A stretch of 64,000 nucleotides of DNA, from NCBI GenBank assembly GCA_009103225.1, contig RHPI01003422.1, positions 63,691 through 127,690 of the forward strand, read 5' to 3'. Positions 29,214 to 64,000 of this stretch are shown here, piece after piece. The DNA comes from Chlorokybus atmophyticus. Taxonomy: Eukaryota > Plantae > Mesostigma and Chlorokybus algae. A model generated the notes under the pieces. It ran no database searches, had not been told where the DNA came from, and worked only from the letters and a program-made list of their open reading frames with translations. Made by a program: the position numbers and the translations under genes. Numbering within the stretch: position 1 is the stretch's first letter; every line of letters begins with the position of its first letter.

Positions 29214-31913
29214 CTAATGAACGTAGCGGCGGAAAGGTGCGTTGTAGCGGAAAGTGCTTGAGAGCAGCTCACAGTAAGGCATGTGCATGTCGCGCGCCTC
29301 CTGCTTGCGGCCCCTATTGATGAGATACTGGTGCTGCATCTGCTCATACGAACATTTGGACTCGAGCTGCTGCCTGAACTGGTCCTCCACCGCGTGCTCT
29401 ACCCGCGCCCGATTCTGCTTCCCAACCGGGTACTCCGTTTGAAACCTGTCAAGTCACATTGAGATACAGCAGCGTGGACACAAGCTATTGAAGGCATCAC
29501 CCTTGGCTTGAAGGGGTAATTTTACTGACACATGCCGCACACGCACGCGCGTACACCCACACTAACACATGCGCGAGCGCACGCACGCACGTGCACATGG
29601 CCATATGCATGCGCATATGCACACAACAACACTCAACAGCAGCCAACATATTGCCTAAGCCCACTATCCTGTTGCGTTTGGAAAAAGAAGCATGCAGTCA
29701 CGCGCACGCGCACCTTTCTGCACTCTTCACGTAGAAAGGGATGTTCAGGCGCTCAGTGCGGAGCTCTGTAAGAAAGCCATTCTCACGTGCAAGGCTGAAT
29801 GCCGGCTCGCTCTGATTATAGAAATACGAGGCAATGAGCAGCATCAGCACGGGTATGAGTTGTATGAGCCCCGTGAGGTTGACCGCATCGTCGCTCCCGG
29901 CGCGTTGTTGTTGCGCCCTCCGCTGCCTGTTGTGCATGTGCGTGCGGAAATGCTGCCCCTGCCCATTCATCCCATAAAAGAACGCATTGAATATGTCGTT
30001 CGGGTCAAACTCCTCGTAATACGCCTGCCGCCCGCCCCCCTGCCTCTGCTGCTGCAGCCTCCCCTGCGCTCCATCCTCGTGGCCGAAGCGGTCATAGTTG
30101 GCACGCTTGTCCTGCAACACACCAAAACGCCATCACGATGCACACTCGCCAATCGCGCATCGAAAACAACATTATTGGCGTGAGTAACATCGTTTTTACA
30201 GATGCTACTCGTGCATACTGGTAGAATTACAATTGCTAGTGATGTAATACTGCTGGTGACAATTGCAAAGCTTGAACACAACAATACAAACATCACAACC
30301 GATTCACTTGTAGCAGTCAACAGACAAACTAACAACATGCAGTAAGAGACACACCCCAAAATGTCACTGTCAGGAGCCACAATTAGATCATGTTGCTCAC
30401 CTTGTCGCTCAGACACGAGAACGCTTTAGACACAGTCTTGAAGGCCTCCTCAGCCCCTGGCGCCTGGTTTTTGTCCGGGTGCAGTTTCAAAGCAATCTGC
30501 AGCAGTAAGAGGGGGGGAGAGGTTAATACTCTTGTGTATGGGCGTTGACATATCGTGTTTATTACCTATAGACAGGATATGTGTGTAGGTAATCTACATC
30601 ACCCACCTTACGGTACGCCTTGCGAACGTCCTCTTCGGCACAGTCTTTCGACAGCTGCAGGACCTCGTAATAATCGGTGGTGGAGCGTATGCGTTTTACA
30701 ATCGCAATCTGCATGTTGGGCAACATGAGTATGTTTATGATAGCGGTAAGAATGTGGTGGTCATGTGGCATACATACAGATATGCAAACATGTTGTGTGT
30801 ATCCAGTTTTCAGGAATACACGCACTTGCAAGCAAACTGTATACACACATACATCTGCGATGTAAGCTGTACATACACTTACATAAGCACACAGATATGT
30901 GCATGCGTGTTGAAATGGATATATTTGTGTGACGTACAGCTAGCCATGCACATCACATAGCAGACACACACCTGTTCGGGTGTGGCGGCCGCTGCAGGTG
31001 ATCCAGATGAAACTGAGGGGCCCGCAGCATCATCTGCGGCCGCAGCCGCATGAGTTCTTTTGCGATGGTGGGAGGAGTGGCCTCCGTTCACGCCATTTGC
31101 ATGATGAACATTGGCTTCCGGCGCATGCTTTATCTGAACAGGCGGGAGGAGAACAGACACGTAAAAATGTTGGTCACTACAAGTAACTACATAACTGGAT
31201 TGGGATTGAGAATGGTTGCACGCAAGAAAATTGATGGAAACATGTACAGAGGATGCATTGGCAACATGAAGTTAAGCAATGGATGGACGCAGCATAACCA
31301 AATCTGGTGTAAGTAGTATATACATGCATGTTTTGTTGGTTGCCAGATTTGCTGCATGAATGAGAGCACACCCTGCGGGTCCAACCAAAGCACCAAGTTG
31401 ATGGTGCAATGCAAACTCAATTGCCAAGGATAACAACCTGAAACAGGCATGCTTGAACACCATGTAAACAGTAGTAACACAGAAACAAAACTGCAGACTG
31501 GATCATATGCGCAGTCTGCGTTCAATAAAGAGACTATGTGTCAGCATTGCGATGCAGCCTTCGACGGTCATGGCACAAACATACACACACAGCCAATAAA
31601 AACAAATACAACACACAGTGACATACTGTCCTGCATACACACACACATCTGTGCAACCTACAACAGATGACATGGGTTCAAATAAATGCAGGCTCATCTT
31701 CTGAAAGGACTACATCTGAAACTCCAAGGCGACAGTTTTCAGAAATCAGTTCGTATGTGTGCTGACCTGAGCAAGCAGCTTTTCTGCTTTGGGAAGAGGG
31801 AACAGGCGGACTGACTTGGCAAGCAGCTTGGCGGCGCGGGCTTGATCGCCGCCCTCCAGCGCTGCTCGCCCCATCTCGTAGCACCTTTCCGCATCATCCC
31901 TGTTGCCCTCCAT
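29214..31913 (-). CDS. DnaJ protein, DNAJB12/14 type (J domain, TM, DUF1977-like luminal domain), 6 exons
   Basis: [23 protein letters not shown]... N-terminus; J domain [23 protein letters not shown]|[31 protein letters not shown]|KRANYDRFG; [18 protein letters not shown]; C-terminus [11 protein letters not shown]...[20 protein letters not shown]...HMPYCELL. Confidence 0.93.
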
Positions 31914-33790: not shown

Positions 33791-36700
33791 TTATATGTGT
33801 GTGCATGATATAGCTGCTGATGTAAGAAGATGATGAATTTCATATATTGCACCTTAAGCATCAAGAAGTTTTGACGTGAAAGCATCATCACGATGTTGCT
33901 CTGTTTGTCACATTATACTCAAACGCATTTGCTGTACATCCATGTATAATGCATACCGCATGGTCGCATGATCGCATGTCATGTGAGTAATTGCTAATCA
34001 CGGCATGACTTGCACATCTCTTGCGGTGTCGAGACCGGCAATTCCCCGAGGGAAGCCGCGGGGAACCCGCGCACCCGCCCGCCGAGGGATTCGAGCCGCG
34101 AGGAGCCGAACCCTCGAGCGTTGCAGTCAAATCAGCGTCGGCAGATCAGTCGGCGTAGCGCCAGCACAAGTTGTGTCAGCGTGAGCTATACATGTTTATA
34201 TACGCCCAGTATATAGCCAGTAATAGTATAGCCTATGTTATGACTATGCAACTAAAAGTAGTGATATGCTTATATGCTTGTACGCAGACAACACACATTT
34301 TATGTAGGTGTATCACATGGATGATGAATGTTATGCACGTTGTTATCAATGGTTTAACGCTGCAGCAGCGGCGGCAGCATTTACATAACCAAATCTAATA
34401 TACCCTACACGGTACGTTAGTGAATACCGCACAAGCACCGACGCACAGTTGGTTAAATGGCCGGGTCTTGATACAGTTCACCCCCGCTAAGAGACTTCGC
34501 TCCAAAAGAATAATCCGCTAATAGCATTTGAATGAGAGTATTAAGCGGCATACAGGTAAATGTTGGTGCCTAAGAGAATATGCTTAACCGCAAAAAGCAT
34601 AATTGTTTTTCATTTGATACTTGCAACTTTAGTGAGGGATATTCCAAGGTTGGGGGAGTAGCGCGTGACGGGTGTGATATTAAGCGTAACGAGCGTGATG
34701 GTTAAGGTGTGACGCGCAATTAGCGTCACAGACGTGATGGCGCGATGGGCTTAACGTAACACGTGTGATGCAATGGGCATGATGGGCGTGATAAAACCGC
34801 GCTTACAGCATATGTATGCTCTTGACATCCAAGAGCATAATATGCTCTTAGACGTGAAGAGAAATTACCGCGCCCAGAGCATAAGATAGCTGAGGATAAA
34901 CAGTATGCTCTTAATGGGGGTAGACTGTACTGAGACACGTTCAGTACCTCAGGGCACCATAATTCCCTGGGGAACGAGAGCACGGCTGGCTTGGGTCGGG
35001 CCGGCCGGCCGGCCGGCATTCTTCGTCACCTTCACACGCCAGGGCCATCACATCTGGCACCCGCGTCTGCCGGGCGCAAAATGCGCGGCCCGCCTGTCTC
35101 TCATTGGCCGGGTGGCGAGCATTTCTTGCCAATCGTTGGATCTGCTCAAAACAGATCGAGCCATCCATAGCACATATCCATAGTACGCAATTGCTCAAAT
35201 ACATACCAAACAAATACGAAATATTGAGCATAACTACATGCACGGTGCAGATGGCCACTTTTCCCGCCGCAAATGTCCAATCAAACAACGTATGATGTGA
35301 TAGTAAACAATGTGGCGACAGATGCCGGCGTTTTGAATGTGTATATACTACGGCATTTGGATGCATGTGGGGGGTTACAGCTCGCTTTAAATTACAATGA
35401 TTGGATTGCAATTGTGAGTCGGCGCGTTACCCATCAAGACCATTCAGATGATAACTCAGTTGCTTGAAATAACTATGTTGGGCATTTTCCACTAAAAACG
35501 CCCATAAAAATTCGTACCAAATGAGTACAGCAATAAACTCGAACAAGTTTGAGTTCTGATTTAAATCAATGAACGTTGCTTTTGGTCTATTGATTGATAT
35601 CATGCAAAAAGTGGCATCGCCGTTATGCCGCAGTGAGTTAATTGCAATGGCACATAAACCACGCGGTCGCGTCGTTTGAACTGTAGTTGCCGATAGGCCG
35701 TATGAAGCTTAAAGAATCTTTGACCACTAACAGTAACGGCGAACGACAACGGTGCGTTTCAATGTTGTGCGCATTTCGTCAAAACATGACGGTTTGCCGT
35801 GGAAACGCGCTCTGCAAACGCGCTTCCAGTGGTACGAGGTTGGTCGGCCCCCCCTACCCCGAAAGAATTATTTAAACCATCATACCAACAACAATCGCAC
35901 TCTGTCCATGAAAACGAGATCATATGCTATCCTCACCGATTTTATGGCCGTCGCCGACGGCCCGTCGGGCTATACATTAGCCGAACGAGTCTCAATGAGT
36001 TTTCAGCATCAGTTGCGAACACGCGCTTGTTGGCGTGAAAGTTCTCTGAGCTTAAGGGCCAAAGCAGAGAACAAACTGTGGCTTCAAGCTCTGTGAGCTC
36101 ACAGAGCTTGCCATCATGCATGTGACATGTAGGATGGCAGTACATGAGTCTTTAACCTTCACATCATGTGTAGGCTATACGAAAACACCATGGTGGTAAC
36201 GCCGGGCATTTCCCATCAAGGCATGTGAGAAAAAGGTGCTCACACGTTGAGACTTCTTGAAGTTTTTCATTACTCAAGCACCCAACCACGAACCGGCATC
36301 ACAATGGCACTCACCTTGAATATGCGTGCATGTTAGCACATTTAGCATCATTGGTGTTTTATGTCATTATGTTTGATCAGCATCAATGCAAGTCACCAGA
36401 CCCAAGCATGCCGATGCGCTCCATGCAACGCAACCATTACATGAGATACGACCATATTGCTGTAAGTCAGCCTACAAGAAAAGGAAGAAGGGGGGGGGGG
36501 GGGGGGGNNNNNNNNNNNNNNNNNNNNNNNNNNNNNNNNNNNNNNNNNNNNNNNNNNNNNNNNGGGGGGGGGGGGGGGGCAAACGCAAACATCTCAACAC
36601 ATGCTGGACAGACAATGGAGCATGCACACTCACCTTAAGAGGAACGCCACAAGGCTTTACAAAGCAAATTCAACTGTGTATTGAATGGTGCAGTTGTCTT

Positions 36701-36909: not shown

Positions 36910-38013
36910 TCACTTGCTCCCATTCTTCATTTTGCCTTCTTCCTCTTCACTTTCCTCCTCATCTGCGTCCCCTTCATCAATCCCTTGCCCTCCTTTCTCC
37001 TCCAGCCCCCAGTCGTCTTCCAGCTCCTCCACCGGAGGCAGCCCTTGGCCGTCCTCTTGGCCCCCTGCCGAGTCCCGCGCATGCTCGTCTTTCTTTTGCT
37101 TAATTGCTATGCTCGCCGTTTCATCTACACCCACCTGCAGGAGCATTGGTTGAAGTAGAGCATAATCATGGACACAGGGTATGCAAGATGGCGTGCTGAC
37201 ACAAGTGTACCCACATACGCACGTGCACGTAAGCACAGAGGCTGTGTGCATTACTAAGCATGCACGGAAAGGCTAGGTGCTAGTGGCGTACAGCCATGTG
37301 TCTCGGCATCCTGTGTCTGTGTGAAAGTATGCGCTAGCACACAGCAGTTCTCCTGTATGCGCGCACACAGGCACAGGCACAGGCACTCGCACAGGCACAC
37401 GCACGCGCGAATGCATATGCGCACACACCTCTCCACCATCGTCCAGGTGGTGTGAGGCAGCGGTGGTGGGCGAAGCATGGGAGTGTCGCACATGAAAACC
37501 GAAATCATCCACAGGCGATTGCAGTTTGTCTGTGTCCTCAACATCATCCTCTTCAAGTTCAAGCAGCTGCTGGGACGTCTTCTTCAGGCCCTGTAACAGC
37601 AAGCATGTGAGTGATATGGCAGGCCCACAAGCGTGAACTACCAACAGAGAGAACACAAACAAAAGAAAGCTCACATCATCATCAGCAGCATCGCCGAACG
37701 CCTGTTGTTCCTCTTTGGGTAGGAGCGGCTCAACCTGTGAATATGCTCAAGTAAAAGGTTCAGTGAAAACTTCAAATTATTACGACAACAACAGCAGCAG
37801 CAGAGCAACCAGAACCATGACTGCAACATTGCACAAGCCAGCGTACAAGCCAGAAGTGCTGTGCGTGAACAGACAGTTGAGTCCGAAAATCTACTACCGA
37901 TCGCACCGGCGGCGACAAAGACAGGAGCAACAACGACAACAGCAACAACCAGCAGCTATAACATAGCTTTGACGCAAGTCTGCCCCCTTACTCACCCTGA
38001 TAGTCAGCACCAT
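36910..38013 (-). CDS. Hypothetical small acidic, disordered protein (~155 aa), 4 putative exons
   Basis: Four segments bounded by GT/AG splice in phase 0: MVLTIR|VEPLLPKEEQQAFGDAADDD|GLKKTSQQLLELEEDD...DDGGE|VGVDE...EEESEEEEGKMKNGSK*. No recognisable family; the start codon is uncertain. Confidence 0.45.
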
Positions 38014-38231
38014 GTTGGAGAGACAGTGTGTGCGCGCAACCAGCTTGCCGCAAGGACTCCAACTCAATCCAACTCCATCCACACCAACAATCGATTGGAT
38101 ATAGCTCCTCTGCAACAATAGATGGCCTGCTGCCCCACTCGCCACTCAAGCACAAGTTGCGCCTCTGAGCATAAACTAAGCACCTGACTTGCTGAAGCTC
38201 AACGACCGAGTTGGGCCGCATTTTGGGTGCC

Positions 38232-41028
38232 ATGGCGCCTGCGGCGGGGGCACTGCCAGGGGCGGCGGTGTGGTTGTCGGTGGGCTTGTCGGCGTCGTCT
38301 TTTAGCCCTGCTGGTGTTGTCGGCCTCCGCCGCGGGAAGCCTGACTGCCCAGCTCGACGCCCCAGCCCAGCCCCAGCCCCAGCCCCAAGCTCAGGCAGGA
38401 GCAGGAGGAGGCACACTCCTGCTGTGCGAGCTTCTTCCTCCTCGTCCGCGGCCGCCTCCACGCCTGAAACGGCTGTGACACCTGGCAAGTGGGATTGCTG
38501 TGCATGGGGGAAGTTTGCTGCTTGTGCTGTGTGTAGTCTGTTGGAGCACGAGTGCAATCCACCAGCAGCAGTGCTTTGCGAGGCTGGCGATGAAGGCTCT
38601 CAGCATGCGGAAGTGGTTGCTTTGCTTGGTATTTGCTTGATGTTGTCTGTCCAATTAGGCAATGCACGCTGCATTCAACTGAAAGGCAGTATGCTATGCT
38701 GCGGAGCACATCACTTGCATTTGTGCTGTAGCAATCGTAATGAATCCCTTGTTATTTCAAACATATGTGTACACACACGCGCTTGCCCGCACACGCACAC
38801 ATGTTTGCACACACGCATGCACACAATCCCCCCCCCCCCNNNNNNNNNNNNNNNNNNNNNNNNNNNNNNNNNNNNNNNNNNNNNNNNNCCCCCCCCCCCC
38901 CCCCCCCCCCCCTCTCCCCCTGCGCATCCAAGCGCTCGCACACATGCATGTATGCACACACGCTCGCACACATGCATGTATGCACAAGCCTGTTGATACA
39001 TGCAGCACAACACTGAACATCATTGGTAACTGTATTCATCTGTGCTCTTTAAACCAATGCGTGTGCCACAGAATTGTGTTTGCTGTTGTCAACTGGTTCG
39101 GGTGTCTCGCAGCCACAAAGGAGCGAGGGCATGGCGATGGTGTTGTTGCGCATGAAGCTCACTTGCATGGAAGTGTTCGCGACATTCGCCTGTACAAAGG
39201 CAGGTGCATGCATGTTTGACGCGGACACACCTATGGCCATCATACAACGCAATCAGCATGTTGTGGCAGGCACGTTACGCATTAGAGATACGCATCTTAT
39301 TGCATAGTGGTTAACGGTGTTACATATGATCACGTATACAGAAATCGCATGCATAACCAAATACAATGCAACAGATGCTGCAGCGGCGTTTGCCAGGATC
39401 AAGGAAGTGTATGACGCCAGCACGCAGCGTATACAAGACGAAGTTGAAGGCATCAAAGCGGGCCACATTCAAGCTGGCGTGAAGGTAACTGAGTTGAGCA
39501 CTGTGTGCATGCATTCACAGTGTTAGCTGAAAAAAATCCTTATCAGGGTCCTTCTTCCGACCTCGCCAGCAACTCGTGCTACCCGTATGTTGGACTCACT
39601 GTTGGAAAAGATGCGTCGACAATGCCGAGACCGTTGGCGTACGGCAACTTGCCTGGTACGCCCGGCACAAGCAAGGATGAAGTGCGGTGCACGTTGCGTG
39701 CACCACAATGTAGACAATCGCATTGAAAGCATGCACAAGACACTCGGGGAGTTTGTGACACAATTTTGAACACGCGGTTTATACCACCAGCGAAAGTCTC
39801 TCATGATACTCATATGCAAATGTTATGTGAACATGTTGTCAGTGGTCTGCTTGACACAACGATGTTGGTGCTGCTTCATGTTGTATGGCGAGCAGGTGCT
39901 GGTACGTATGGAGCGACGGTGACACGGCCGGATTTGTTTGAGGAGTATTACATGGAACAGCTTGAACTGCTGCTGCAGAACTATGACGTCCCGTTGGCTG
40001 TCGGCGTGTCCAACCAAACCATTCCCCTACCCTTTGTACAAGTAAAACCTGACTCTTGCAGAGCACAGGAGGTGTCACATCATTTCCCTCCCCTGCTGTG
40101 AGGACCTTAGACATCTTGTGTCATCGTTTCTTGCAGGAGTTGAAGGTGTCCGAGTTGAATCCCGAGCAGTGGCCGGCAGTGCAATCGCACTTCACTATGC
40201 CGGATCTTGCGCGTATAGATGATGGCATACCCAACGGCACGCACGCTCGCAAGCGAGTGCTTCACTACATTACAGTGTGCTTCAGTTGCGTGAATGTTGG
40301 GTAACACTCCACTTGCAGGGTTGGCATGCCACGGCCGCTCGCGTTGTACAGCGCAGAGAGAGTGGACTTGTCTCTCGCGAGGCTTGGACACTACACTGCC
40401 ACTGCACCTGAACATTTCCAACGCTTTGTGCTTTTCACCAACTACCAGCGCTATGTTGATCAGGTGGGCTCGCTGCTTTTTGACCTACTGCGCGCGGGGG
40501 AGACATGCGTCCACTTACGTGTTGTGCACACAGTTTGTGGAGTTTGCACACGAGCAAGTGCGCAGCGGTACGGATGGCTACTCTGCCATTGTAACACCCG
40601 GTGACGTCATAACCACAAGTGACGGTGTCACACAAGGGACGCCTCCCAAATCCCTACCTCAGGTATGTGTGAGCACACGCGTGTGTGCGCGTATGTGCAG
40701 GCGTGCGTGTGTGAATGCGCACATGTGCGCGTGCACGCATGCGTGCGTGCACATGTGTTTGCGCGAGTCAAGTTGGTATTAGTCTTTGATGTGTTTGAAC
40801 TGACCTGTTGACAGATGCCCGCTTACCATCTCGTGCGTGAGGGACACACTGGCATCACCCTCATCAACATCGGCGTTGGTCCCAGCAACACAAAGACAAT
40901 CACCGATCATGTAGCTGTACTGCGACCTCACTGCTGGCTCATGGTAAGCGATAGCCCCATCACACGGATTATAGCACATGGAAAGGAGGCGTGTGTGTGT
41001 GTGTGTGTGTGTGCGCGTGCGCATGCGC

Positions 41029-41066
<38 letters not shown>

Positions 41067-42118
41067 ATGCGTGCATGCACACGCACGCACCTTTTTGAGC
41101 AGCGATAACGTGAGTATTGCACACAGGTCGGGCACTGCGGGGGGTTGAGGGCGTCGCAGAGGCTTGGTGACTACGTGTTGGCGCACGCATACGTACGACG
41201 CGACCACGTCCTTGATGAGGACGTCCCGCTGTGGGTCCCTGTGCCTCCTCTCGCAGAGGTCCAGATTGCTCTGCAGCAAGCGGTCTCCAAAGTCACTGGT
41301 ATATTTTTTGGACTCTGGCAACACAGCCTGATACACGAGTTGCAACAGGTTTTTTGAAGCAACTCATGCAAGCCTGCCTGTGTTGGCAGCACGCACGCAC
41401 ACTCATCGCCGCATAACTTGCAAAGGTGTTTACAGTTGCATGTCAGCGGTTGAATCGCAAAACATGCAAGCCCACATAAGTACAAAAGACGTTGTACATG
41501 TGAGTACTGCTTGGAATGTGCAAGTTGCAGTCAGCACTCAGCTGTTTTTATTCATGCTTTATCAACTGCATGCACACAAATTTGCTTTCATAAGCTTCGC
41601 TCGTGAGTGAGCATGCAATGTTACAGCTGGCATGGGGTCGCAGGTGCATCCGGCAGTGAGCTCAAGAAAATCTTGCGCACGGGCACGGTTGTGACAACAG
41701 ACGACCGCAACTGGGAGTTCCGACGCACGGAGATGGCGGCGGCGTTCAACCAGAGCCGTGCAATTGCAATCGATATGGAATCGGCGACGGTGGCGGCAAA
41801 CGGCTTCCGCATGCGCGTGCCGTATGGGACGCTCCTGTGCGTGTCCGACAAGCCCCTCCACGGTCAGCTCAAGCTCAAAGGCATGGCCAACCAGTTCTAC
41901 AACGAGCGCGTCGGACAGCACCTTGCTGTCGGCATCGAGTTCATCCACGCCCTCCGCGACTCTGTCAACTCACTGCACTCGCGCAAGCTCCGCGCCTTTG
42001 ATGTGAGCTGCGTGTTTATGCTTGTTTTGGTACAAGTGCCAGCGTGTGCGGTTTATACAACCAAGCGGTATTGTTTTGAACGCTCACTGTTGGTGTGCAG
42101 GAGCCTGCATTCAGATGA
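38232..42118 (+). CDS. amn: AMP nucleosidase (EC 3.2.2.4), proteobacterial Amn type, with an N-terminal transit-peptide-like extension; about 10 exons, two GC-AG introns
   Basis: Spliced product: ...YPYVGL...GAGTYGATVTRPDLFEEYYMEQLELLLQNYDVPLAVGVSNQTIP...RPLALYSAERVDLSLARLGHYTATAPEHFQRFVLFTNYQRYVDQF...LPQMPAYHL...GITLINIGVGPSNTKTITDHVAVLRPHCWLMVGHCGGLRASQRLGDYVLAHAYVRRDHVLD...RTGTVVTTDDRNWE...SRAIAIDMESATVAANGFRMRVPYGTLLCVSDKPLHG...LHSRKLRAFDEPAFR*. These are Amn signature motifs across the full length. Confidence 0.95.
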
Positions 42119-43330
42119 GAAGAGAGAAAGTCTGCCTGTGCTTGTAACGCCGGGCTGGAGCTGTGCAGTTTTCTGTGCTGGTCTGCAAGCTGCTTGCAGA
42201 CCAGCCCTTCCATTTGTAACATTGATGTTTATGTACATTCATGGCGCCTTTATGGGAGTGTTGATTGGCTTCTAATGCAGATGTCATTCAATTTGTCACG
42301 ACAAGTTGGTTTGATGCTGTAGCATTTCATCACACCCTTCTGATACGTTGCGATCTCTCAAACACGCTACAAAAGACACTGTACGCGCACAAGCAGAGTT
42401 GGCCTCTCATTGTTGCTGTTACTAATGGCTAATAGTGTAATCTCCCCCATCAAGCAGACCAGAACCAATGACTATCTCTGTATGCTGGATCCGTACCATG
42501 AGTGCATAATTGCAGGTGGAGCTATCAAGCGAAGCCCATATTTCATCATCACCCTCTTGAGAACAGTACAACAATAGTTCAAGCGTTGAGTGGCTGGCGG
42601 CCCACAGGTAACTTGATTTGTCGAATTGTGCTGTCATCAATCCTATCTGCAGGAGGTCTCAATTTGCGTTTTGTGACAACATCACTGCTACTGCATGACC
42701 CATTTTGGTTCTTCCTCCCTTTGCCTTGATGTTGCACAACCAGGTGATACCGGTGATCAATCAAGGTAAGCAGTTACAATGCTGCCAGCTGATTGTGGTT
42801 GCAGCATGTGCTCATGGCGTGCGTGCGCGTGCGTGACACATGATGATGTTGTGGTAATGGCTGGCATAATGTTGTGTGATTTTGCTGCTAGGTTTTCAGC
42901 CTTGAGGATTCAACAAATCTTCGTTGTATATTTCAGTCACTGGCGTTGACTTCTGCTTGGCTGAATACCATGCTGTCAAGCAGGTGTCAAGTCAATGCCC
43001 GGTATGGATTCACATGTACTTGTTTGAAGAGTTTTGAATCTTCGTCTTCGTCTGATTAGTGTGTGTCTTAAGAAGTCCATGGGCTTCTTTATGCCACGAT
43101 CTGAAACTTGTTGTGTTTGTATGTGTGAGTGGTATGCTAGCTGTCTCGCCCTTTCTTCATGTGAACACGCAGTGCATTACGCAGTCTGTTCAGCTGCATA
43201 TCAGTGATGAAGCTGAAGGAAAGCTTCTCCTCTTTGCAAACGTGCACGTGGTATGATGATGTAGTGTTCTTGCTGGAGCACCCTTCATTACACTTACATA
43301 TAAGTGTTTGGCTGTCAGCGCTGCCCCGAA

Positions 43331-51549: not shown

Positions 51550-54500
51550 CTGGCTCATAGGCCGCACTGGTCAGTGTGGTCTATTAGCCAGCCTATGGCA
51601 TGCCGTTTAGGGTGCAGTAGTCATTGCAGTCCATGAGCCAGCCTCATAGGCTGCATTAGATAGTGCAGCCTATGAGGCTGCACTACCATAGCTGGTAGCC
51701 TAGCAAGTGTGTGTAGGTGTGCACATGCATGCGCGCATGATAAAGAGCACTTGCATGCTTGCATGTGTGAACAGTGCGATCTATAAACCTAATTGTAAGT
51801 GCGTGCGTGTACATTCACACATGAATCAGTTTCGCAATAAACCTATGCACGCACGCGCACAGGCACAACAAGCGCACCTTCAAGATGGTGGCGAGCATGG
51901 GCAGCTGGGGCGGGGGGCAGCTTGCGTACGCGGAGCCTTTACTACACACCTCTGTCTTCTCAATAGCGGGCTGCTGATTGCCAGCTTGCGGAGCAGTCCG
52001 CGTACCTGCACGTGAGCGCATGCACGTGTGCCTGCCCAGTCACGTGTGCGTGCACGCATGCTTGTATGTGTGTGCACATCTCATTAAGGAGGAAGAGGTG
52101 GGGGCCGGGAGGGGCAACACCTACTCACTAACATAGTGTACACGCAGAACTGACTCAGCCAGTACTGCGTGTATGAGCCAGCCTGCAGCAACTGGTCAAT
52201 GGGCCGCACTGTTTAGTGCGGCCCATCAGCCAATAAGCCAACTGCAACAGAGTGTGTGTATGTCTGTACATGTATGCGTGCATGGTGAAGCTTGCATGCC
52301 CATGAGCATGCGCTTGCGCATGCATGTGCTTATGCGCACATATCCTCCCCCTTCCCTCCTCTTCCCCCTCCGCTTACCTTGAGATCTAGCAGTCAGCGCG
52401 ATGCTGTGGGGGAACAAAGAGGGAGAAATACCTCATAGCACAGCACCGAATTGCCCACCCGTTCGACCTGTGGGAGTAATAGCTCGCACGCGTCAGTACT
52501 CATGTGCTAATGCCATAGCGCACACAAGCCTTGCCGCAAGGCTTGTGTGCGCTATATGAGCACACGGAGTCAATCACAATGTGCGCACTGCTAGTATGTA
52601 TGCATGTAAGGGTGAAGCATATGCATTCCTAAGCCTACCAGCTGAGCATTACCATCTGAGCGTTTGCCTTCTTGGCTCGCCTTCTTGTCATCTGCGCCGC
52701 GTATTGCCCAACAACAGCAGCCTGCAGCACCCTGCGTATTACATCATGGAGCAGCATTGTCCGTAGTCGAACGCAGTCATGGCAATTCCAGCCAGCCGCC
52801 TATGACTTTTGGAATGTAGTGATCAGATTGGTCATTAGATTACAAAAGTCATAGGCGGCTGTCTGGCTTGATCGCTGCCTCGTAGGCCGCACAATTCAGT
52901 GCGGTCTGAGCCAGCTTTATAGGCTGCACTGGACAGCCTATGAGGCTACGCTATCAAGTGCAGATAGCGAACAACTGTGTGTATGTGTGCATGCGTGCTT
53001 GCCTGCGCGTGACAATGAGCGCTTGCGTGCTTGCATGCGCATGCCTGTGTGGACAGTGCTATAGGTCTATGAGACGATTGTAACAAGTGTGTGTATGTCT
53101 GTACGTGCATGCGTGTGTGCCAAGAGCCCGCAAGAAAGTAAGATAGAGTAAGAGAACATGCATCTTGCACGCACATGCCCGCGTGCGTGCACTTGCGCGT
53201 GTGTGTGTGCGCAAGTGAACGCATGCATGGGTGCGTGCGTGCTTACTGAGTGCTTGACCATGCACACTTGTTCATGAGGTCCACTGCCAACGTTCCGCGT
53301 CAGCTTCAGACCTTCATTGTCGATTTCCAGGGCTCCCTAAGCCTAGGTAGATGCTTGGGCTGTTCTGTTACACCTTTATGCTTGCTGAGTGCTTCAACGA
53401 CAACTATTGGCGGCGCGGTGATCATGTCTTCCAGAGGCAGGTCCGCATGCAGCTTCTTTGAAGCGCATGCGTCCATGTCCAGCTGGCGCTGCACACTGAC
53501 AGCCGAAAAAGCGTCCTCGGGTGCCGCATGCTCCTCATCCTGACAGGATGAGGAGCATGCGGCAACCAAGGAGGGCGTGCCGCGGACGTCCACGATGACA
53601 GCTGAGCCTCAGCTGCCGGCGGCCGCATGTCACCACAAACATGGTGGTGAGACTTTGTGACAGACTGAATGCGATGGCCCATCATTGGATGAGCGAGTGA
53701 GTGAGTGCGTACATGCGCAAGTGAGTGAGTCAGTAATGGGTTGAGTGAGTGCAAGGTGAGTGAGTGAGAGAGCAATGAGCGAGTGAGTGGTTGGACCTGC
53801 GATAGGACTGCCGTCCGTAGCGTGAGTGAGGGCGACCATGCGTCTTTGAGGACGTCCGGGCAGATAGTCCCCATTCGCCATGCTGATGTTGAGATGCCTG
53901 CATGTGTATGCATGGTTGGGGAAACAATAGTTAGTAGCAGCACTGCAATAACCTATGCAAAATTGCAGCAGGCGTCACGCATGCAACGCACGTGCAGGCC
54001 CCTTTTTGCATGTGTTCGTGTGAGCGTGCCGCGCCTGTCCGTGCAGGCATGGGTATGCGTGTGGGGGCGATCGCGTGGGTGGGTGGGTGTGGGTGTTCAT
54101 TGCAGAGCATGTGCGTGCTCATGCATAACCGGGTGCAGATGCGGGAGGAGAAAGAAGAGGGTCTGCTCTCACCATACTTGACTGATAAAGCTCATCCTTG
54201 GGGGCTTAAACGAGAAAGTCGCTGTCATGCAGATGCAGATTATGAAACATGTTGGTGTCTGAGTCATTGTTGAAAGCAGCAACATAATGTTCAAGCACAC
54301 ACGCACTATTACAAACAACACAACCAACGACACCACTCACAACCAATAACACCCGCAACAAACACAACCACCCCCACCCTCACCACCCATCTGTGTCTTT
54401 CAGGTGCGGGGGGGGNNNNNNNNNNNNNNNNNNNNNNNNNNNNNNNNNNNNNNNNNNNNNNNNNNNNNNNNNNNNNNNNNNNNNNNNNNNNNNNNNNNNN

Positions 54501-54730
54501 NNNNNNNNNNNNNNNNNNNNNNNNNNNNNNNNNNNNNNNNNNNNNNNNNNNNNNNNNNNNNNNNNNNNNNNNNNNNNNNGGGGGGGGGGGGGGGGGGGGG
54601 GGGAACACCTCTGTTCACATGCATAGTGCATTCGCATAACTTTCTCATAGGCCGTACTGAACAGTGCAGCCTATGAGCCAGCCTACAGCAACCAACTCAT
54701 GGGCCGCAGGCTGAACAGTGCGGTCTGTGA
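51550..54730. repeat. Dispersed palindromic repeat family (CAGCCTATGAG / CTCATAGGC / GGCCGCACT...AGTGCGG), probable transposon subterminal repeats
   Basis: Perfect IRs at 51639-51680 (17-bp arms), 52199-52226 (12-bp arms) and 52793-52861 (19-bp arms). Related motif clusters at ~51555, ~52880-52950 and ~54645-54730. Confidence 0.65.
53797..53897 (-). pseudogene. Isolated, frameshifted exon of a ubiquitin-conjugating enzyme (UBC27/UBE2K-like)
   Basis: Between CAG| and |GT the segment reads HLNISMANG[+1]ICPDVLKDAWSPSLTLRTAVLSQ, matching the E2 core HPNIS...GAICLDILKD.WSPALTL.T.LLS. I found no flanking E2 exons. Confidence 0.65.
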
Positions 54731-55986
54731 GCAATACGAACAAAGCAGTGTGTATGTGTATGTGTATGCGTGCATGATGATGAGCACATGCATGCTTGCA
54801 TAGCATAAAAGCACGCGCGGCTGGCTGGCATTGCTTCACGTAAACACAACAATCAGATTAAGACTGTTGTGCACGTGCATTCAGACAAGGAAAGCTATCT
54901 GCTTCAAGCAGAGCCACTTTGCAAGCATGCAAGTGGCAATGACATGAGACAAAGCTTATTCAACAAGCAATTAAAACTATAGCTTGATAGTGAACAATTT
55001 AGCTGAGCAGTGCGCTTGCATTATACTGTTCAAAGGCGCGCATGTGCAGGCGTGCATGTGTGCTTGAGTATTGACTACACGTTTGATTGTGGTTGTTGCT
55101 ACTACGGTCGCAGCAGCACCTGCGGCTATAGCTGAGCAGCTGTAGCAGCACGCGGCACTGGCACGCTACAACGTACAGTCTTACCCCGTTATAAAATTAC
55201 CGTATATCCTTCAACTTGCTAATCCACTAACGGGGTTATTCTCTTGGCGTTTAGAAGAATATATATTCTTTTATCGTTTACGGAATATATATTCTACTAA
55301 TGAGGGTCTAGCCAGAGAAGCGCATGTGCATTTACAAGAATAAATATGCCATTATCAAACCAAGTGCACAGCATATGCATAACGTTAATCTCATGAGTTC
55401 AAAGTATGTTGTGGACAAGTTCATAATAAAAGCTTCAATATGCATTGTGGTATGCATTGCGTTATAGCATGCACGGTGTTGTTAACATCATGAATAAATA
55501 ATAAATGCTCATATGCATGTGTGTCGGCGTGCACGCACGTGCGTGCGCAAGTGTACATATTGTCGGGTCGAGGAGAGTCGAGGGTCACGCTGTCTCGGGC
55601 CGCTGCAGAGAAAGACATGCTTGCTAGCCCTGTTGCTGCAACATGTTGTAATGTGTAGCAAAAACAAATGATTACTCAGCTCGTATGCCGACGAGTGCTT
55701 GCTGGAGCTGCTCCGCTGTCGCTGAATAGCGTGGATATGTGGAGGCGGTGTCCTCTTTAATATACATGCTGTGCTGTAGGACACACAGTCAACAAGCCAC
55801 CCCCCCCCCCCCCCCCNNNNNNNNNNNNNNNNNNNNNNNNNNNNNNNNNNNNNNNNNNNNNNNNNNNNNNNNNNNNNNNNNNNNNNNNNNNNNNNNNNNG
55901 CCCCCCCCCCCCCCCCCCCTGAACTTCTGGGAAGGTTCCAGATTCAGAGCTCAGTTGCTGCGCAAATGAGGAGGGCCGTTGGCGCG

Positions 55987-59745: not shown

Positions 59746-59869
59746 AGTCCCCCCCCCNNNNNNNNNNNNNNNNNNNNNNNNNNNNNNNNNNNNNNNNNNN
59801 NNNNNNNCCCCCCCCCCCCCCCCCCCCCCCGCTAGGTGTTCGAGCTCCTAGAAGGACACATGGCGGTCC

Positions 59870-61409: not shown

Positions 61410-63240
61410 AGGATGTCCTCATCGCTCTGTCCGGCTTCGGTGGGAGGAGCGTCATCAGCGTGGATGAACTCAGCAGGTGAAAGCATCTCCGCACGTGGAA
61501 TGGAAAGATGCTACACAATGTGACACATCTTCTGCACAACAGCCTGCTCTGTGTTGTGTGTCGGTGTCGAGAGTGGGCGCGTGCCAAGCCGAAGGGGTGA
61601 TGCCACTCTTGCGCCAACAGTTCGTAATGGTGAGTGCGGAGAGCTCCTCATATGCCTCGCGACACCATATGACTGCCTCCTTCAATTGCACCTTAACTTT
61701 GCGACAGCCGATGCTTGGGTCTGCGACATATTGCCGCAAAGCGCAAGCTTGCAACAAGCTTGCGCTTGCACCTGTCACAAACAAAATGAGAAAGAATAAC
61801 AACCTCTGACAAACAAGGGGGGTCCGGACGCGGCACTGGCACGCNNNNNNNNNNNNNNNNNNNNNNNNNNNNNNNNNNNNNNNNNNNNNNNNNNNNNNNN
61901 NNNNNNNNNNNNNNNNNNNNNNNNNNNNNNNNNNNNNNNNNNNNNNNNNNNNNNNNNNNNNNNNNNNNNNNNNNNNNNNNNNNNNNNNNNNNNNNNNNNN
62001 NNNNNNNNNNNNNNNNNNNNNNNNNNNNNNNNNNNNNNNNNNNNNNNNNNNNNNNNNNNNNNNNNNNNNNNNNNNNNNNNNNNNNNNNNNNNNNNNNNNN
62101 NNNNNNNNNNNNNNNNNNNNNNNNNNNNNNNNNNNNNNNNNNNNNNNNNNNNNNNNNNNNNNNNNNNNNNNNNNNNNNNNNNNNNNNNNNNNNNNNNNNN
62201 NNNNNNNNNNNNNNNNNNNNNNNNNNNNNNNNNNNNNNNNNNNNNNNNNNNNNNNNNNNNNNNNNNNNNNNNNNNNNNNNNNNNNNNNNNNNNNNNNNNN
62301 NNNNNNNNNNNNNNNNNNNNNNNNNNNNNNNNNNNNNNNNNNNNNNNNNNNNNNNNNNNNNNNNNNNNNNNNNNNNNNNNNNNNNNNNNNNNNNNNNNNN
62401 NNNNNNNNNNNNNNNNNNNNNNNNNNNNNNNNNNNNNNNNNNNNNNNNNNNNNNNNNNNNNNNNNNNNNNNNNNNNNNNNNNNNNNNNNNNNNNNNNNNN
62501 NNNNNNNNNNNNNNNNNNNNNNNNNNNNNNNNNNNNNNNNNNNNNNNNNNNNNNNNNNNNNNNNNNNNNNNNNNNNNNNNNNNNNNNNNNNNNNNNNNNN
62601 NNNNNNNNNNNNNNNNNNNNNNNNNNNNNNNNNNNNNNNNNNNNNNNNNNNNNNNNNNNNNNNNNNNNNNNNNNNNNNNNNNNNNNNNNNNNNNNNNNNN
62701 NNNNNNNNNNNNNNNNNNNNNNNNNNNNNNNNNNNNNNNNNNNNNNNNNNNNNNNNNNNNNNNNNNNNNNNNNNNNNNNNNNNNNNNNNNNNNNNNNNNN
62801 NNNNNNGGGGGCGAGTCACAATTTCCTACAAGTTATGTCAATTGACACTCAGTTTTGCGAGTTACGAATCAGTGTGTTTGACTAGTGCGACGCAGCAACA
62901 GTAAATGAAGCAACACAAGCCTAGCCTTGAACGCAGCGATAATGCCTGCGTTTAGAGGTTGAACTTTGCTTGCTGTGATGGGAGGTAGAAAGAGACATTT
63001 CACTGGGTCCACCTGCAGCGTCTTGAACCCTTTCTCTATGCCCGGTATCCCATACCTGCAAGCATGTGTGGAAGAATTGTCGAGCAGCAACAAGACATTG
63101 CGCTTCTGTAGCTTCATCTGCAAACCGAAGCTGCAGAGCCCGCGGCTGGAGATCTGCATGACAACAACACTTAGTGCCAACACGAACTTACAACAAAAGT
63201 CAACTTGCGATGACATGAACCCTACAACCCTATAACACTT
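61410..63240 (-). mobile_element. pogo/Tigger (Tc1-mariner superfamily, DDE_1) transposase remnant split by an assembly gap (61845-62806)
   Basis: RNVLLLLDNSSTH...CLFLPPITASKVQPLNAGIIAAFKA (62870-63130) and VQLKEAVIWCREAYEELSALTITNCWRKSGI (61600-61700) are typical DDE_1 motifs. Confidence 0.85.
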
Positions 63241-63444: not shown

Positions 63445-64000
63445 TCGTCGAAAAATTTTTTCCCTGCCGGCCGACTAAATATTGGCGACGCCCGTTCACC
63501 TGAGGATACTTATTTAGACTGTCGTGGCTCAGTCCACCTAAAATCTCGTTACACGTGCCGAAGTATAACGGCAGTCCCCAGCCGTTACACAAAGGGACTG
63601 ACTTGGACTAACAGGTACCTGTCAGTTACATACCCGTTAGGCAAAAGGGACTTAACCTAACTAACCGATACATGTTAGTTAGGTACAGTTTGTGTCGTCG
63701 CAATATGTTTTCCCTGCCGGCCGACTAAATATTGGCAACGGCCGTGCACCTGAGGACGCTAAGTTAGACTGTCGTGGCTCAGGCCACCTGTAATCTTGAT
63801 ACAGGGACCTAATAGTAACTTTCGTTACTGTAAGGCCCTTTTTGTTACTATTTAGTCTTTAACAGTTGACTTTGCCTAACTAACAGGCGCCTGTCAGTTA
63901 CCTTACAGTTTGTGTCGTCGCAATATGTTTTCCCTGCCGGCCGACTAAATATTGGCAACGGCCGTGCACCTGAGGATGCTAATTTAGACTGTCGTGGCTC
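63445..64000. repeat. Tandem repeat array, units of about 250 and 220 bp, running off the window end
   Basis: The conserved block TTTTCCCTGCCGGCCGACTAAATATTGGC...CACCTGAGGA...TTAGACTGTCGTGGCTC recurs with CCCTGCCGG at 63462, 63712 and 63932. Confidence 0.9.

Follow-up and report, generated by a model that had tools for sequence, protein, structure and literature searches.

AMP nucleosidase (Amn) has been treated, in textbooks as well as in a recent structural study (PMC9584410), as an enzyme unique to bacteria, and contrasted with the AMP deaminase of eukaryotes. The structure of the Klebsiella enzyme places H188 and Y189, both contributed by the neighboring chain, together with N205, R381, W383, M404, E405, D428 and K436 in the active site (PMC9584410). 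We describe here an Amn gene in the alga Chlorokybus atmophyticus, located in a 64,000-nt stretch of contig RHPI01003422.1 (assembly GCA_009103225.1, contig positions 63,691–127,690, forward strand). This whole stretch is hereafter referred to as the window, and its positions are used throughout. The RNA-supported gene spans positions 39113–42118 of the + strand. Judged from its sequence, it is a complete bacterial-type AMP nucleosidase (EC 3.2.2.4), with the regulatory N-terminal domain followed by the PNP/MTAN-like catalytic domain. We consider it highly probable that the nucleus of this alga carries a working bacterial-type Amn gene that the alga obtained from a bacterium by horizontal transfer, the most likely donor being an alphaproteobacterium with the 489-residue Amn of the Kiloniellales/Sneathiella type. 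A previous reading of this DNA, made without database searches (the original prediction), had started from the view that Amn is a prokaryotic enzyme, and the literature does describe Amn as bacterial.

The Amn proteins of E. coli, Salmonella and Klebsiella (structures 1t8r, 2guw and 7uwq) share with the algal protein the two-domain layout and the nine active-site residues, but are overall less identical to it than is a subfamily of 489-residue Amn from Alphaproteobacteria. Members of this latter subfamily (P0317 from GCA_039029395.1, P0351 and P0359) resemble the algal protein in carrying both domains from end to end with few gaps, and P0317 is 81, 86, 81, and 73% identical to algal exons 7, 9, 10, and 11, respectively. 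Unlike them, the algal gene is interrupted by at least ten spliceosomal introns and has eukaryotic neighbors, and its product is 15 residues longer because of two small inserts, possibly with a long N-terminal presequence in addition. The short Amn-like proteins (TIGR01721/PRK07115, 1ybf), the methylthioadenosine/S-adenosylhomocysteine nucleosidases and the purine nucleoside phosphorylases have in common with the algal protein the catalytic fold and the Met-Glu … Asp core. The short Amn-like/PNP_UDP_1 relatives score 74 and 62 bits vs. 209 bits for exon 11, and they lack the AMNp_N domain, which the algal gene has.

Family Assignment and Predicted Activity

The exon model was built from the three-frame translation of positions 38100–42200, block borders being set at GT/GC…AG sites. 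On the + strand of this region, blocks of Amn-like protein alternate with stretches rich in stop codons. When joined, the 12 exons of the model form a single open frame of 605 codons (501 if counted from the Met codon at 39131), the C-terminal end of which is …SRKLRAFDEPAFR followed by the stop codon. A tblastn search with bacterial Amn detected one Amn copy in the whole window.

The NCBIfam model NF006142 was matched in collinear order by six exon pieces, at model positions 84–130, 139–168, 174–219, 267–309, 310–366, and 369–487, with scores of 55.8, 13, 71.8, 88.7, 105.9, and 208.7 bits; their simple sum over the exon pieces is about 544 bits, the cut-off being 307. AMNp_N (PF10423) was found in exon 5 (71 bits, cut-off 27, profile positions 64–110) and, with 20 bits, in exon 6 (positions 125–147). 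PNP_UDP_1 (PF01048) was found in exon 11 (33.7 bits, cut-off 25.1), with a weaker match in exon 10. When compared with the Amn structures solved for E. coli, Salmonella, and Klebsiella, exon 11 yielded E values of about 1e-45 (7e-46 for E. coli 1t8r). These matches, together with the 64% identity to P0317 over 482 residues obtained by blastp, bear out the initial description of the protein as a full-length Amn with both domains. Its C-terminus had also been described as similar to those of proteobacterial Amn, and the end SRKLR(A/S)FDEPAFR is indeed common to the alga and to the alphaproteobacterial subfamily.

HMMER alignments of exons 7 and 11 with 1t8r show that all nine active-site residues listed above are kept. 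When columns conserved in at least 97% of 294 full-length bacterial Amn were considered, the algal protein keeps 122 of the 124, the two changes being F to Y and L to F. As the active site is fully conserved and nearly all family-invariant positions are kept, the algal Amn is predicted to be functional, and very probably is a working enzyme. Conservation suggests that it would convert AMP to adenine plus ribose 5-phosphate. By analogy with the E. coli and Azotobacter enzymes it would probably be a hexamer activated by ATP and inhibited by phosphate. Such an enzyme could trim the adenylate pool and feed both adenine salvage and pentose-phosphate metabolism.

Transcription and Exon–Intron Structure

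In two public runs from the same organism, presumed to be of RNA, 0.31–0.32 of the sampled words of region 38100–42300 were present, a share that fits exons alone. The evidence for splicing comes from a single run, X2, the contigs of which were compared with the window; repeat stretches 38355–38411, 38889–38927, and 40981–41092 were left out when contigs were placed. A single X2 contig of 1,596 nt (depth 12, no mismatches) covers exons 2–12. It skips ten stretches, all of them exactly at the predicted intron borders and including one GC-AG intron, and extends 72 nt beyond the stop codon. Its 5′ end is position 39113, the first base after the acceptor-like sequence tctcgcag, 18 nt ahead of the ATG at 39131. 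As a contig devoid of ten introns cannot derive from DNA, the Amn gene is transcribed and spliced; it is a nuclear, spliced, transcribed eukaryotic gene. RNA evidence had been proposed along with the original prediction as a check on whether the gene is silent, and the X2 contig shows both transcription and splicing.

The RNA-supported gene consists of eleven exons. The first of them, exon 2 (39113–39203; from 39072 if an alternative acceptor is used), holds the Met codon at 39131 (GGCATGGCG). Exons 3 (39375–39484) and 4 (39547–39655), defined by the contig joints and by the model, encode further parts of the N-terminal domain. Its AMNp_N core lies in exon 5 (39896–40041; Pfam PF10423, E 1.2e-19, contig joints). 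Exon 6 (40137–40252) is followed by the GC-AG intron 40253–40318, the contig joining 40252 to 40319. Exon 7 (40319–40463), which aligns with residues 170–212 of 1t8r_A, carries the equivalents of active-site residues H188 and Y189 (codons 40389–40394) and N205 (40440–40442), and exon 8 (40534–40662, contig joints) corresponds to a variable interdomain linker.

The PNP-like catalytic domain begins in exon 9 (40815–40943; MPAYHL…GVGPSN, NF006142 positions 267–309) and continues in exon 10 (41127–41298; VGHCGGLR…, positions 310–366, contig joints) and exon 11 (41644–42002), the latter aligning with residues 363–478 of 1t8r_A/2guw_A. The remaining active-site equivalents are all in exon 11: R381 at 41706–41708, W383 at 41712–41714, M404 and E405 at 41775–41780, D428 at 41847–41849, and K436 at 41871–41873. 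The last intron, removed by the joint 42002 to 42101, splits the C-terminus between SRKLRAFD and EPAFR, so that exon 12 (42101–42190) comprises EPAFR, the TGA stop codon (42116–42118) and 72 nt or more of 3′ untranslated region.

Nine of the ten RNA-confirmed introns are of the GT-AG type, the tenth being the GC-AG intron 40253–40318 (donor GCGAGT). The gene had been said to be split by about nine spliceosomal introns: their spliceosomal nature stands, whereas their number has to be corrected to ten confirmed in RNA, plus a hypothetical one at the 5′ end. The GC content at third codon positions of the Amn coding sequence is 0.66, and introns have 49% GC. Microsatellite-like (GT)n/(GC-GT) runs and CACGCA-rich low-complexity runs occur in the introns (40670–40760, 40981–41092, and 38760–38990).

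Bacterial Relatives and Phylogenetic Position

An HMMER search with exon 11 over 1.84 billion representative proteins gave 700 matches, none of them exceeding 76% identity. Bacterial scaffolds aligned with exons 7, 9, 10, and 11 were used as further search queries. Compared by blastp over about 482 residues, members of the 489-residue alphaproteobacterial subfamily retrieved in this way are 60–64.5% identical to the algal protein, whereas Parvularcula/Maricaulis-type Amn are about 51% identical to it. The named members of the subfamily come from Kiloniellales metagenome-assembled genomes (MAGs), Sneathiella species and other Alphaproteobacteria. When one genome per bacterial species was considered, the best full-length matches were again from Kiloniellales and further alphaproteobacterial MAGs (61–63.5% identity). 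Three of the nearest proteins, P0317, P0305, and P0359, are each encoded in a dense bacterial gene neighborhood, and the nearest Atlas clusters are 100% Bacteria. Scans of bacterial genomes and metagenomes for the exon 11 locus yielded nothing above 72% identity.

No eukaryote-like match was recognized among the matches listed, 30 sequences and six gene contexts having been inspected, in searches that are unreliable for eukaryotic orthologues. Word searches with the bacterial scaffolds likewise returned no eukaryotic protein; their matches were dominated by relatives of the scaffolds, and the alga's own protein was missed as well.

Two kinds of matches were considered as possible eukaryotic sequences. 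Exon-sized or run-on representative matches, which might be taken for eukaryotic exons, are frameshifted or chimeric gene calls from high-GC bacteria. Among the long Amn-like proteins (600–800 residues), P0120 is encoded among genes of bacterial type (LutABC, TetR, ABC transporter); for two other long forms, P0105 and P0148, the contigs are not long enough for a bacterial or eukaryotic assignment. Two bacterial loci, L001 and L002, which hold the nearest bacterial Amn genes, have a conserved neighborhood in common, made up of genes for an SH3_3 protein, an ADP-ribosylglycohydrolase, Amn, a Na+/H+ exchanger with TrkA_N and ParA/MipZ-type ATPases. In L001 a frameshift divides Amn into calls of 97 and 400 residues.

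In a tree of 62 rows, the alga falls inside a clade of 24 rows belonging to the 489-residue subfamily, with a support of 99 in the Shimodaira–Hasegawa-like approximate likelihood ratio test (SH-aLRT). In a careful tree of 56 rows its sister is P0359, with a bootstrap of 90 and an SH-aLRT of 86; it belongs there to a set of five rows (89/95) and is nested many nodes deep. The algal branch has a length of 0.73 vs. a median of 0.31. In the approximately unbiased (AU) test, the best tree in which all 48 bacterial members group together to the exclusion of the alga was 15.9 log-likelihood units worse (p = 0.038), a marginal value obtained for a group that was defined after a tree had been seen.

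On this sequence evidence the algal gene is a member of the alphaproteobacterial Amn subfamily, and is probably nested within it. Such a place points to a transfer from a bacterium to the alga, the direction and the age of which we infer. The transferred gene would then have gained at least ten spliceosomal introns. These introns, together with the shifted composition of the coding sequence, suggest that the transfer is not recent; no date can be assigned to it. A bacterial ancestry by horizontal transfer had been proposed for the gene from the outset, with a phylogeny against bacterial Amn as a check. The spliced protein falls inside a bacterial Amn subfamily, and the close relatives found are all bacterial.

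The marginal AU value is one of several points that weigh against a functional gene transferred from this subfamily. In a quick tree of the same 56 rows the alga appears elsewhere in the clade and not beside P0359, so that its exact sister shifts with sampling. Eukaryotic homologues with an identity above 50% to a bacterial representative would be hidden in the representative library, and the bacterial scaffolds guided which relatives were sampled. Profile, structure and database searches were run exon by exon, the whole-length comparisons being our own blastp searches and alignments. Finally, the AMP hydrolysis, ATP activation, phosphate inhibition and hexameric state expected of the protein are carried over from the Amn family.

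The 5′ End of the Gene

Whether the protein carries an N-terminal extension depends on the DNA ahead of exon 2. The original prediction had included an Ala/Ser/Arg/Pro-rich extension of about 85 residues, said to resemble a plastid transit peptide. An ATG-initiated open reading frame (ORF) does exist at 38232–38484 (+ strand; 84 codons plus 1 nt, hypothetical exon 1), its ATG being in a good context (GCCATGGCG). A GC content of 70% sets it off as an island from its flanks, which have 51–53% GC, and its 84 residues include 18 Ala, 15 Ser, 13 Pro, and 9 Arg, with 19 Ser plus Thr, 10 basic residues and 2 acidic ones. This hydroxylated, basic and acid-poor composition resembles that of transit peptides, and the same composition would suit a mitochondrial presequence. 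A stramenopile-type ASAFAP-like motif, as which the N-terminal LSASS/FSP might be read, can be set aside, the DNA being that of Chlorokybus. ORF and composition of the proposed extension are real; its being part of the protein is not borne out, as the one spliced contig obtained begins at 39113 and includes no part of it.

Met 39131 is likely the ancestral start codon. Residue 1 of bacterial Amn aligns at residues 105–113 of the 12-exon model (residue 1 of P0376 at residue 105), that is, near Met 39131, the ATG of which is also in a good context. We give about an even chance to a cytosolic Amn of 501 residues which starts at this Met with an essentially bacterial N-terminus, the upstream DNA being 5′ untranslated region and the ORF at 38232 a GC-rich feature of the promoter or of this untranslated region. 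The X2 contig begins just ahead of this ATG, and exon 1 is devoid of RNA support. The contig ends precisely at an AG acceptor, and this speaks for an upstream exon and thus against such a start; so do the frame, which is open upstream of Met 39131 as far as 39053, and the fact that GC-rich 5′ ends are often lost at a depth of about 12.

An Amn that starts at ATG 38232 and is directed to plastid or mitochondrion by a 104-residue presequence, after removal of a GC-AG intron at 38485–39071, is a possibility to which we attach less weight. At the end of the ORF, CTG followed by GCAAGT is the only strong donor nearby. When all donor–acceptor pairs were enumerated, the only good in-frame join proved to be that of 38484 to 39072 (preceded by cag), which leaves the frame open into the enzyme and adds 104 residues before Met 39131. 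Besides this join, the GC-rich island, the good start context and the residue composition with 2 acidic residues in 84 favor a translated exon 1. A contig that ends at the acceptor to the base suggests splicing to some upstream sequence and a branch of the assembly graph at this point, as expected if more than one upstream sequence is joined to 39113.

On the other side, no RNA contig covers any part of the ORF, nor do the word shares of the two transcriptome-like runs allow for it. The exon backed by RNA begins at 39113 and not at 39072, and no decent donor among the enumerated pairs keeps the frame of exon 1 into acceptor 39113. The Met at 39131 matches the bacterial start, a stop-free in-frame join would arise by luck in about 1 of 8 cases, and composition cannot separate plastid from mitochondrion. 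Upstream of 39113 there could be an exon 1 with two alternative acceptors, an untranslated exon or a retained intron. That the ORF at 38232–38484 supplies a presequence at all seems to us somewhat less probable than that it does not, and plastid targeting specifically is unlikely. With the bacterial N-terminus aligned at Met 39131, an enzyme that lacks an extension and stays in the cytosol is just as likely. As the splice of the upstream ORF is unseen in RNA, the plastid targeting proposed at first remains hypothetical.

The hypothetical first intron (donor GCAAGT) would be of the GC-AG type, as is the confirmed intron 40253–40318. Two GC-AG introns within one gene would be unusual.

Alternative Origins and Significance

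Horizontal transfer from an alphaproteobacterium has to be weighed against vertical inheritance from the alphaproteobacterial ancestor of mitochondria, the gene having been kept in this lineage and lost nearly everywhere else. The nearest relatives of the algal protein are Alphaproteobacteria, and this leaves a small chance for such an origin, which also counts against transfer. We nevertheless regard it as very improbable, because of the nested position of the alga and of the otherwise bacterial appearance of the family. The alga lies several nodes deep in one modern Amn subfamily and is not sister to all alphaproteobacterial Amn. For lineages that separated more than 1.5 billion years ago, an identity of 64% would be high. 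Moreover, the Atlas clusters are 100% bacterial and the enzyme has been called unique to bacteria (PMC9584410), so that very many independent losses would be needed.

A bacterial contaminant, an assembly chimera or a dead relic, toward which a nearby assembly gap and the exclusively bacterial relatives might point, can be dismissed, since ten spliceosomal introns are precisely removed in an RNA-derived contig (the original prediction had likewise argued from the introns against contamination), the reading frame is uninterrupted and retains 122 of 124 invariant positions, the gene is flanked by intron-bearing eukaryotic genes in the same genomic contig, and the gap falls outside the enzyme-coding exons.

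With transfer from an alphaproteobacterium as the preferred origin, the algal gene adds a new eukaryotic member to a family considered bacterial. Our full-text literature search found no paper that connects algae, plants or horizontal transfer with AMP nucleosidase, and the Chlorokybus/Mesostigma genome paper and its supplements do not mention AMP nucleosidase. In the public genome the gene probably carries an automatic annotation. An intact, expressed, intron-bearing Amn from a streptophyte alga provides a clean counter-example to the notion that the enzyme is unique to bacteria, and adds one more well-documented case of bacterial gene uptake by algal relatives of land plants. It also offers a simple, assayable enzyme for studies on the integration of a foreign adenylate-pool regulator into the metabolism of eukaryotes. 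Transfers of single enzymes into algae are common. The understanding of the Amn family itself is left unchanged, and we assign the finding a moderate weight.

A more far-reaching scenario, which we think improbable, is that an added first exon enables an early-diverging streptophyte alga to send a bacterial, ATP-sensing Amn to its chloroplast or mitochondrion, the gene being confined to the Chlorokybus/Mesostigma branch. If this were true, the organelle would have gained a prokaryote-style means of destroying AMP and of resetting its energy charge, found in no other organism of the plant lineage. Such an organellar energy-charge route is speculation.

Assembly Gaps and Neighboring Genes

An assembly gap of 49 N (38840–38888), with a C homopolymer on both sides, lies in the hypothetical intron 1 or 5′ flank of the Amn gene. 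No read or contig crosses it, and continuity of 38232–38484 with the enzyme exons was not seen. As the gap is upstream of all RNA-supported exons, the reading frame of the enzyme is unaffected. Of the six gaps that the assembly has in the window, five fall in poly-C/poly-G runs (36508–36563, 38840–38888, 54416–54579, 55817–55899, and 59758–59807). Such tracts seem to be numerous in this genome, and the assembly seems to break at them systematically. The sixth gap (61845–62806, 962 N) accounts for the apparent GC content of 28% at the end of the window.

Upstream of Amn, an intron-split gene at about 29698–30846 (− strand) encodes a J-protein: one ORF piece contains the beginning of a DnaJ domain (E 3.5e-5), and another matches DUF1977 weakly; the protein resembles the DNAJB12/14-like proteins of the endoplasmic reticulum type. 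Closer to Amn, at 36910–37674 (− strand), there are two Asp/Glu-rich ORF pieces without a Pfam match (…EEEDDVEDTDKLQSP… and …DEEESEEEEGKMKNGSK). These are probably exons of a divergent neighbor, the 5′ end of which is directed toward Amn. Should exon 1 of Amn be real, about 0.5 kb would be left as a promoter shared with this divergent neighbor.

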